Source: Podarcis muralis (taxonomy: Eukaryota). Taken from it: a stretch of 64,000 bases of DNA. A program made the position numbers and the translations under genes. Below the pieces are notes generated by a model that was given only the letters and a program-made list of their open reading frames with translations, searched no databases and had not been told where the DNA came from. Of the stretch, positions 4,201-7,200 are shown in pieces (position 1 is the stretch's first letter; the number at the start of each line of letters is the position of its first letter). The stretch is from assembly GCF_964188315.1 (NCBI RefSeq), contig NC_135657.1, forward strand, positions 53,506,001-53,570,000, read 5' to 3'.

Positions 4201-7200
4201 TGGGGATAGAAGGGGATTGGTGAAAGGGAATTTTAAGAATAATTTTAGTCACATTACAAATACGTGATGTTTATATGGTTTGGGGTGCAGGGAGCGAAGA
4301 GGCTTTCTCCACCTGTCTGAATTAATTGGTGTCCCCTCCGTCTCTCTGTGTGTGTAGTCAGAAAGGAATCCCTTTCACTTGCTTTCTGGAACTGTAGCAG
4401 TATTTGTCTACTGTATTAAATGAAGTCTATTTCCTAAGACTCCCTCCCCTCCCTCAAGAATTTACAAAGCGTGGAAGGAGGAGTGTTGTATGCTAGGATC
4501 AACCACCACATACTTAATTTTCCTCCAAACCAATTCACACAATCATGGGGCATGCTATGGGAACTATAAAACCAAGCTGCAATGTACACTAGTTTTGTGC
4601 TGCTATTTATGCATGCAGAACTGCAATCCTCTGCACAGCAAGCAGCGCTGTTGCAAAACTGGCTTGGGAAAGGCAGTGGGCAGTAGTTTCAGGTCATCAT
4701 CAGATGACTATGAATCTGCCATCAGTAGTTTCAAAATTAAGTTTAAATTTAAGCTACTAAGATACATTAAAGCATAGCCACTAAAGATGCTTAGCCATTT
4801 TCATGTATCCTGGAGGGGGCAGTCACAATGGGTAAACACAGCTACAACACAGCTACAACACTGTTAACACCTAACTTGTCGTAATCAGCCTGACTTTGAA
4901 TAAAATGCCTGGGTTTTGTGGGGCAGATAATCAACCAAAATTAGAGGTTGTCTATGTGGATATTTAATGTCTTAAGGCTAGATTCAACTAAGGACTTGTG
5001 CTAGCTCAAAAGCATTTTCTCAGCTTGCCAACCTCTCAACTGGCTCTTTGGGTGGTCAGGAAAACCCCTAGAACAGCATATGCAGGTGGAGGAGAGGGAG
5101 GATTGTTTCATCTGGCAATGTGATATGCTTGCACTGATGGAACAATTTCCATAATGTTACGCTGAATTGCTCCCCAATAGTTTCTTCCACAGAAAAGTGC
5201 TCCTGAAAGTCCTCTCAAAATAGAGACTGAAGCTCTCAGCTTCCATCACACTTTATAAACCACAGAGACTATTTGGGGTTTCCTCAAGTGTGAGAACTAT
5301 ACAGTGCACACATACTCTATGCAGGCTTTCTAATCTTGGTCTTCACAGGAAGCTGCCTTGTTATGAGTCGGACCACTGGACCATCTAGCTCAGTAGTGTT
5401 GAAACTCAGTGGCAGTGGTTCCCCAGTATTTCAGAAGATAATCTTTCTCAGCCACACCTGGGGACTGAAGCTGAGCCATTTTGCCTGCAAGGCAGATGCT
5501 CTGCCACTGAGCTATACCCCTTCTCCAAATACCCTAGGACAGGGGTCTGCAACCTTTAAGACAAAAAGAGCCACTTGGACCCGTTTCCGAAGAAAAACAA
5601 CAACTGGGAGCCGCAAAACAAGCCAAATGTAAATAACCACACATTCTTCCCCTTCCCCCATTCTCTCTCTTTTCCCTGAGTCTATTTCAGATAGCAAAGA
5701 GGGGTATGGTACCTCTCATATCCATTTTTTGCAAAGCACCATGTGCATAGAGGGCATTATACAAATTAATACATAGGAAAGTGTCTGTCCCTCCCTGCAG
5801 TTCAACTCCCTCTCTTTTTGCTAACAGCTCATATCCATTCCTTCTGCTGGTGCAACTTTCTCATCATTTCTACATAGCAGCATTTATAAACCAGTGCCAG
5901 TGAAACTGGGTGAAAAGAAGGTGAGAGGGAAGAGATATGAATATTTATGTGTGTATATGTATACATACATACATACACCTACACAATTACAGGTTTGAAG
6001 CCAACTTAAAATAAAAAGAGCTGGTAAGCAAAGGAATCTGTGGTGCTTTCCATGGGATCCGGGGACATGTCAGCTAATACTCTTCCCTTTCTTCTTCATT
6101 TGCTTGTCTCTGCAGCAAATCTCGAGGGGGAAGGAAGAAGGGCAGGAATTGCATAGGCACGAGAGAACGGGGGAAATCCCGCATGCAGGATTTTGGTGCC
6201 TAACAGCTCCCCCTCCCTCTGCAATTGCTCTCGTGCTCCCCGCCTCTCTCCGAGGCCGAGATGCTGCATCACGGCACCTGCTGGCTACCTCTGGACCCCC
6301 TCCTCGTCACTGACGTAATTCACCCCTTCCTCCCTGACAGGGAGGGCGGGCCCATTTTGTGGTTCACCTCAGATGCTCTCCCTCAACTCGGCGGCCACTC
6401 AGAAGCAAGGCACGGAAAAGGATCCCGAAGCACCACCGCCACCCCTCACACACACATACACACACACACACACACACACACACCCCGCCCCGCCATTTCC
6501 CTCGAGCGTGCGTGCTCTCTCTCTCCCTCGCCTCAGGTGCCTCGCACACGGGGCTGAGGAGAGCGTGGCCTGGGAGAGCGTTCCCCCTCGCCGCCTCCGC
6601 TGCCCGTCCTACCCCGGGGGAAGCTATGAGCCATGAAGCCGCCTGGCAGAACTTCCCTCCGGCGGCGGCAGCAGCAGCAGCCCTTCTCTGGCCGCCGCCG
6701 CCTCCTCCTCCATCCCAGCAGCCGCCGCCTCTCGAGTTCCGCCGCCGCCGCCGCCTTGCTTTGCCCGGCTCGGCTGCCCAGCTCCATCCCCCTCCTCTTT
6801 CTGGCGCTTCTGCTTTTCTGCTCAGGGTCCCCGAGGATCCCCGCGGCAAAGGTGTAAAAGAGCCGCGGGTTGCTGACCCCTGCCCTAGGACAAGAACCCC
6901 CAACCTTTCTTGGTCTGCAGGCACATCTGGAAATCCAAGAACCTGCTGTGGGAAACACAAAATACCCATTTCCCAGTAGAAAAACTGGTGGTGCTCAGGA
7001 CTGCTCCCCCCCTGCAAAAAAAGCACCCTGCAGACAAAACACATACACCCAAACCAAAAAAAGCAAACATCAAAAGCCAAACCTCCAAGGTGTAAAGCAA
7101 TTCCCCAAACAATGCAGAAAAGGGCAGGCAGAACACCCCTTCACCCTAAAAACAAGCAGGAAAAATACTTCCATCCACTTCAGCAACCAATCAAATACAA

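Follow-up and report, generated by a model that had tools for sequence, protein, structure and literature searches.

A young, multicopy hAT-type transposon with a promoter-like core in an SNX9 intron of the lizard Podarcis muralis

We analyzed a 64-kb window of the Podarcis muralis genome (64,000 nucleotides; assembly GCF_964188315.1, contig NC_135657.1, positions 53,506,001 to 53,570,000 of the forward strand; all coordinates below are those of the window), which harbors a 1343-bp unit at 5540-6882 within an SNX9 intron. The unit consists of two arms of a miniature inverted-repeat transposable element (MITE) that enclose an unrelated interior of ~1.2 kb, and it is a real, intact and young member of a multicopy hAT family with a promoter-like core. 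Most likely, it represents an amplified Pack-hAT, a known kind of element of which few amplified cases are on record for vertebrates and none has been described in squamates. More specifically, it is probably one copy of a young, moderately amplified and non-autonomous hAT element of the Pack-TIR type (TIR, terminal inverted repeat), which carries the captured 5′ end of a gene.

The initial annotation, made from the letters of the window alone, had placed 15-bp TIRs and a perfect 8-bp target site duplication (TSD) at the ends of the unit, and both were recovered. The octamer CCCTAGGA, which has just five occurrences within the window, abuts the two ends as a perfect direct repeat, and the left TIR at 5540-5554 (CAGGGGTCTGCAACC) is complementary at 14 of 15 positions to the right TIR at 6868-6882 (reverse complement CAGGGGTCAGCAACC). 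Alignment by BLAST and MAFFT also confirmed that both ends match the ordinary 280-bp MITE at 13298-13577, as summarized in Table 1. The ~18 bp said to be missing from the right end between GAGCC repeats proved to be an 18-bp segment that is present in the 280-bp MITE; the deletion sits at a 6-bp direct repeat, AGAGCC. Compared to the family consensus described below, the 5540-6882 copy has in addition privately lost TG and GGAG at 6839/6840, and the TG/GGAG-bearing consensus resembles the MITE more closely (…ATCTGC..GGAGCCGCGG). A composite transposon, with host DNA between two whole MITEs, was considered and rejected, as the arms are partial and there are no inner TIRs.

Judged by its termini, the unit fits a non-autonomous hAT-type element. 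The 8-bp length of the duplication is that of hAT elements, and the TIRs begin with CAGGG, which agrees with the YARNG rule for the start of short hAT TIRs. The hAT target consensus nTnnnnAn is not matched by CCCTAGGA, whose second and seventh letters are C and G, respectively; however, this consensus is a statistical preference only and thus a weak criterion. No autonomous hAT element was found within the window, nor any long open reading frame (ORF) with hAT domains. Three other short elements, at 10138-10417, 13298-13577 and 53212-53517, share related TIRs and 8-bp TSDs.

The copy number and the junctions were analyzed with Logan contigs mapped to 5100-7300, which come from three probable DNA runs, X2 (organism A), X13 (organism B) and X16 (organism C), and one probable RNA run, X1 (organism A). 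The word depth of the unique flanks is 9.9-10.7 in X2, 9.2-12.9 in X13 and 86-161 in X16, compared to depths on single interior contigs of 94.5 (X2, 5638-6388), 236.5 (X13, 5637-6212) and 1207-3008 (X16), giving interior-to-flank ratios of roughly 9, 21 and 8-35, respectively. Moreover, the positions 6350, 6373 and 6546/6548 of the CpG island in the interior each lie under 10-16 distinct contigs per run, whereas a diploid single-copy locus can give two. As the depth exceeds that of the flanks and so many distinct contigs cover single positions, the interior is repeated, in roughly 10-20 near-identical copies. The high-depth consensus contigs differ from the 5540-6882 copy by only 7 of 718 and 7 of 572 letters (~1%), and the loaded family is therefore young; among the differences, the 5540-6882 copy shows CpG-to-CpA changes at 6546 and 6548. 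The ratio of ~9 in organism A against ~21 in organism B would, if real, mean that amplification went on after the two lineages split.

What is repeated is the composite of cargo and MITE arm, which was amplified as a whole. One contig, with the TG/GGAG variant at 6839/6840, extends across the junction of cargo and right arm and has a depth of 230.8 in X13, equal to that of the whole family, and of 749.7 in X16. The flanks at 5174-5321 and 7098-7300 are single-copy, so that the repeat unit is limited to about the element's own ends. The left arm, for its part, reaches a summed word depth of ~2x10^5 against ~10 in the flanks, and thus belongs to a very abundant MITE superfamily.

The joints of the element are bridged by contigs that stem from runs other than the assembly. 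An X2 contig (5487-5559, no differences) and an X1 contig (5152-5561) lead from the left flank into the left TIR. The step from the left arm into the cargo is covered by an X1 contig (5602-6344) and, with at least 54 letters on each side, in X16, there with a 38-nt duplication variant. A further X1 contig (6794-6957, no differences) passes from the cargo through the right arm and the TSD into the flank. In addition, the contigs of the right flank extend 20-23 nt into the right TIR in each of the organisms A, B and C, a length below the 31-letter criterion, which is suggestive of an element end at the same SNX9-intron site in all three; no joint of an empty site at this locus is listed among the contigs of A, B and C.

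Further analysis of the interior revealed an organization that looks like the 5′ end of a vertebrate gene, in which a CpG-poor upstream part is followed by a CpG island, a leader and an ATG. The description in the initial annotation, of AT-rich DNA unrelated to the MITE that grades into a CpG island, holds well: GC content rises from 0.40 to 0.647 and the observed/expected (o/e) CpG ratio from 0.05 to 0.70 (Table 1), compared to an o/e of 0.02-0.08 in the flanking DNA. Except for the (CA)n tract, 5620-6840 has no match to the MITE or to the rest of the window. The island contains a motif resembling a cyclic AMP response element (TGACGTAA, 6311-6318), a GC box (GGGCGG, 6344-6349) and two microsatellites, (CA)n at ~6447-6484 and (GCC/CAG)n at ~6652-6760. 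The ATG opens a 74-amino acid (aa) ORF in which a low-complexity part, with many GCC/CAG-encoded runs and much poly-Ala/Arg/Gln, precedes a hydrophobic stretch at residues 52-63. A transposase-coding interior was rejected, since a Pfam search of eight interior ORFs gave no domain, including no hAT, BED or dimerisation domain.

Table 1. Coordinates of the element, its parts and neighboring features in the window
Feature	Position	Strand	Details
Left TSD	5532-5539	.	CCCTAGGA, identical 8-mer at 6883-6890
Left arm of the MITE (80 bp, 15-bp TIR included)	5540-5619	+	BLAST/MAFFT; 75/80 (93.8%) against the reverse complement of MITE 13499-13577
CpG-poor, AT-rich part of interior	5620-6100	+	GC 0.40, CpG o/e 0.05; (TACA/TATG)n at ~5940-5986
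CpG island, 740 bp	6101-6840	+	GC 0.647, CpG o/e 0.70; formal CpG island
74-aa ORF, MKPPG… start; candidate captured first coding exon	6633-6857	+	In-frame stop just upstream of the ATG; extends into the right arm
Right arm of the MITE (42 bp, TIR at 6868-6882 included)	6841-6882	+	MITE 13334-13357 (24/24) and 13298-13321 (23/24)
Right TSD	6883-6890	.	CCCTAGGA, perfect
Repetitive right flank (repeat D5)	6891-7023	+	Depth ~220-1800 versus ~10 further right
SNX9-type BAR-domain exon	7346-7440	-	PF10456, E 1.9e-12, profile 124-154 (Pfam span 7319-7459); donor gtaagg
Next SNX9-type exon	4035-4148	+	PF10456, E 1.1e-12, profile 155-196 (Pfam span 4032-4172)
Reference 280-bp MITE, same family, opposite orientation	13298-13577	-	TSD TTTCAGTC/TTTTAGTC (7/8)
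280-bp hAT-type MITE	10138-10417		TIR CAGAGGTGGGCAATC/CAGGGGTCGGCACCT, TSD ACCTTAAT/ACCTAAAT; core very GC-/CpG-rich, repeated GCGCATG motifs
306-bp hAT MITE, different family	53212-53517		TIR CAGGGGTAGGCAACC/CAGGGGTCAGCAACC, perfect TSD GTTTAGAA; internal tandem duplication of ~70 bp

Searches for the source gene of the cargo gave one tentative lead. With the 74-aa ORF as query, phmmer found no homolog among 1.84 billion representatives, the sole match (P0001) being an 890-aa tandem-repeat artefact; searches of the PDB and of the ESM Atlas gave no match either, the best score in the latter (0.46) being meaningless. A word-index search with this ORF and a 69-aa ORF (6104-6310) likewise returned no match, under a length filter that excludes full-length proteins, ADAM23 among them. 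N-terminal signal regions are poorly conserved in general. The start MKPPG resembles that of human ADAM23, which we take to begin in the same way and to have an unusually late signal sequence. A PDB search with 31 residues of the presumed human ADAM23 N-terminus returned no chain, and the string MKPPG had no match in a full-text literature search. Given the MKPPG start and the late hydrophobic stretch, exon 1 of ADAM23 is a possible source of the cargo, and we regard it as a candidate whose chances fall somewhat short of even.

In X13, contigs at about single-copy to threefold depth match the element from 6726 or 6753 to 6839 and then continue for 17-181 letters that are unlike the right arm. 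They are candidates either for the donor locus or for differently built copies; one of them, at single-copy depth, matches 6753-6839 and is followed by 181 unlike letters, which makes it a candidate donor. The initial annotation had taken the interior for host DNA with a single-copy donor, and had counted a repeated interior as grounds for giving up the capture. The repeat of ~10-20 copies does not bear out the former; yet a multicopy interior is also what is expected of an amplified Pack element.

We propose that, in a single event, ~1.2 kb of foreign DNA with the anatomy of a vertebrate gene 5′ end took the place of the central ~130 bp in an abundant 280-bp hAT MITE, for which exon 1 of ADAM23 is the candidate source. 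The capture would most likely have occurred by template switching during repair or replication. Since both arms and TIRs were retained, the composite could then have been moved as a unit by a hAT transposase supplied in trans, and would have been amplified to ~10-20 copies, with an 8-bp duplication expected at each insertion. One of these copies would have inserted in CCCTAGGA, within the intron of SNX9 that comes after the exon at 7346-7440.

Core replacement is also in line with what follows the left arm elsewhere. Across MITE subfamilies, arm position 5619 is continued by three different sequences, namely CGGGAAGG… in the 280-bp MITE, AAGCCAAATG… in the 5540-6882 element and CATTGAGACAAAAAATAAC… in other copies, which suggests that the 80-bp left arm may act like a module with exchangeable cores. 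Very short derivatives of the arm exist as well, in which 5592 is joined to 6860 with 14 other letters (X1).

Several observations weigh against the capture and amplification of a gene 5′ end. Neither a donor locus was seen nor a homolog found for any interior ORF. The contig depth ratios are rough, and summed depths should not be equated with copy numbers. The X1 contig that joins the left arm to the cargo in organism A has only 18 nt on the arm side. The length of the 74-aa ORF is no better than chance, as other frames and the other strand of the same GC-rich DNA hold open ORFs of 87-238 aa, and a pyrimidine tract codes for its hydrophobic stretch. Finally, the distance from the left end to the ATG, which a CpG-rich leader precedes, is 1094 nt; this layout would fit the 5′ part of an autonomous hAT element, and a similar geometry of leader and ATG is found in maize Ac.

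This last point leads to the alternative that survives best, namely that the interior is native to a longer hAT element. The 1343-bp unit would then be an internal-deletion derivative that keeps the promoter, the CpG-rich leader and the first codons, or else would belong to a non-autonomous family with a core that cannot be traced to the host; in either case, the multicopy status requires no capture event. Apart from the position of the ATG, the ~10-20 copies of the interior, for which no single-copy donor was seen, are compatible with such an origin, as is the core of the 280-bp MITE at 13298-13577, which is itself CpG-rich (o/e 0.98). The X13 contigs with a different sequence beyond 6839 could stem from copies that extend into the gene of a transposase. 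By contrast, the eight interior ORFs are devoid of hAT, BED and dimerisation domains, and an ORF with runs of Ala, Arg and Gln and a hydrophobic stretch, behind a leader in which (CA)n and (GCC)n tracts occur, would be typical of host first exons rather than of transposases. Moreover, the three different continuations of arm position 5619 look like replaced cores rather than parts of one contiguous ancestor. We consider a native interior unlikely, albeit a serious competitor to the captured gene 5′ end that we favor.

A second alternative concerns the order of events. An ordinary MITE might have resided at CCCTAGGA, and a later internal break might have been repaired by copying ectopic DNA, so that the TSD would predate the cargo. 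Such gap filling is the main route by which single-copy Pack-TIRs of animals arise (PMC8277862), and the TSD cannot separate the two routes, because the in-place filling of a resident transposable element (TE) keeps it as well. The initial annotation had concluded from the intact TSD that the cargo-loaded unit itself transposed to this site; the TSD alone is insufficient for this, whereas arrival as a loaded unit is supported by the composite, which is multicopy, ~1% divergent and shares one common junction structure. That the same composite and right junction, found at ~10-20 times the flank depth, arose by independent filling with identical breakpoints is implausible. The 5540-6882 locus could at most be the founder, yet it carries the private TG/GGAG deletions and the CpG-to-CpA changes. 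Gap filling at this site is thus very unlikely. Least probable of all is a misassembly that fused MITE ends to the cargo where repeats abound and a gap is close: a 200-N gap does lie at 3729-3928, and the strand changes between the two consecutive SNX9 exons that enclose the element, so that the local assembly is suspect, and the whole element is not spanned by any single contig, but contigs of other runs bridge both flanks, arms and cargo, organisms B and C show the same junctions again, and the perfect direct 8-bp TSD shows that the flanks were contiguous before insertion. The chimeric cargo junctions that the initial annotation had named as a danger are therefore improbable.

A possible transcription of the cargo was examined with the 31-mers of 6496-6840, of which a share of 0.17-0.31 was found in probable RNA runs of three organism labels and 38-45% in large runs of five organism labels. 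These shares suggest that this segment, or one nearly identical to it, occurs widely in the group, and they may reflect expression. The probable RNA run X1 covers the left flank and the upstream interior, but not 6506-6727 or the far right flank, a pattern that fits background DNA or pre-mRNA as well as it fits any other source.

The element sits ~460 bp into the intron after the exon that ends at 7346, and its 74-aa ORF is antisense to that exon. Within the same gene, the PX-domain exon (~16650) and the last exon (~1238) lie on the minus strand, unlike the exon at 4035-4148, and the motifs tried did not reveal, anywhere in the window, the exon that should lie between 4148 and 1238. The flipped exon reflects either a local mis-orientation near the gap or a real inversion. 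An inversion breakpoint inside the element was rejected, as a direct and perfect TSD requires collinear flanks; for the same reason, the strand switch must lie in ~4173-5089 or reflect a local assembly problem.

Both flanks of the element carry other repeats. On the right, the sequence after the TSD reads CAAGAACCCCCAACCTTT (6883-6908 versus 5532-5557) and is identical at 12 of 18 positions to the TIR region of the element. An older hAT-like end appears to adjoin the same CCCTAGGA, which has a palindromic core, CCTAGG, so that two insertions may have used this one 8-bp target. On the left, 5400-5523 is a tRNA-derived short interspersed element (SINE) in reverse orientation, at which hundreds of contigs per run end (5514-5523); the loose contig ends read ...GGGATTGAACCTGGGACCTTC, a motif that is presumably typical of squamate SINEs.

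Comparison with known loaded transposons places the lizard element between several systems. Like the Pack-MULEs of rice and other plants, it would be a TIR element that carries a fragment of a host gene and amplifies. Pack-MULEs are biased toward the GC-rich 5′ ends of genes. They differ in being Mutator elements of plant hosts, with a TSD of 9-11 bp and long TIRs, compared to the 8-bp TSD, the 15-bp TIRs and the one cargo of the lizard element. With Ac/Ds of maize it shares the retention of the terminal ~100 bp around a replaced or deleted core, the 8-bp TSD and, presumably, mobilization in trans. The Ds core, however, is usually derived from Ac or a short filler, whereas the lizard core is a 1.2-kb block with promoter-like anatomy.

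Among animals, the closest counterpart is Pack-hAT-N8_XT of Xenopus tropicalis (PMC8277862), likewise a non-autonomous hAT element whose core was replaced by gene 5′-end DNA and which kept its TIRs and was amplified; for the lizard cargo, the gene origin is putative. Pack-hAT-N8_XT carries 291 bp of 5′ untranslated region (UTR) sequence from a known parental gene, CAPSL, in three copies. The lizard cargo is ~4 times longer, exists in ~10-20 copies and would comprise a promoter, a CpG island and a putative first coding exon, compared to the 5′ UTR only in the frog. Ssk-FB4 of Drosophila melanogaster (PMC8277862) is another multicopy loaded TIR element, with an upstream region and coding sequence, and it shows one chimeric structure across loci, as the lizard element does, which argues for transposition after a single capture. 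It differs in that it carries a nearly complete gene and makes protein, whereas the lizard element contains only a putative first-exon fragment.

The initial annotation had held that gene capture by TIR elements is much less documented in amniotes than in plants. The animal record is fuller than this assumes: across 100 animal genomes, Tan et al. (2021) reported 370 Pack-TIRs, of which 208 belong to hAT elements (PMC8277862). In that survey, single-copy cases arise mostly by gap filling in a resident TE, and for 94% of the primate cases the orthologous site holds a TE that is unloaded. Multicopy, transposition-dependent Pack-TIRs account for only 4 of 281 unique cases, three from frog and one from alligator (PMC8277862). 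The only lizard surveyed, anoCar2, had 77 annotated TIR TEs and no Pack-TIR (PMC8277862); with so few annotated elements, squamates were effectively unexamined there. Compared to the definition of a Pack-TIR as a TE with TIRs around a non-TE segment, both arms of the lizard element correspond to the MITE, and the interior has no counterpart in the MITE or the window, yet is itself repeated ~10-20 times, so that its standing as a non-TE segment would depend on a host source. As for the same chimeric structure at several loci, by which multicopy Pack-TIRs are recognized, the interior has a depth of 9-21 times that of the flanks (8-35 times in X16) and 10-16 contigs per position.

Amplified loaded TIR transposons are common in plants and nearly unreported in vertebrates. 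Taken alone, the 5540-6882 copy is one more instance, with an unproven source gene. Still, a young family that brings a whole CpG-island promoter and a start codon into introns of unrelated loci could give rise to additional transcription start sites, to antisense transcripts or to chimeric first exons. It is conceivable, though on balance doubtful, that the hAT MITE lineage of wall lizards is a serial capturer of CpG-island promoters and first exons, in which cores are replaced at the same arm boundaries and the products are then amplified to tens of copies. If true, such serial 5′-end capture would be the animal counterpart of the 5′-biased, GC-rich capture by Pack-MULEs and would scatter potentially active promoters through introns. 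If several families with different cargos share the same arms, the lizard would provide a tractable vertebrate system for the capture of gene 5′ ends by TIR elements.

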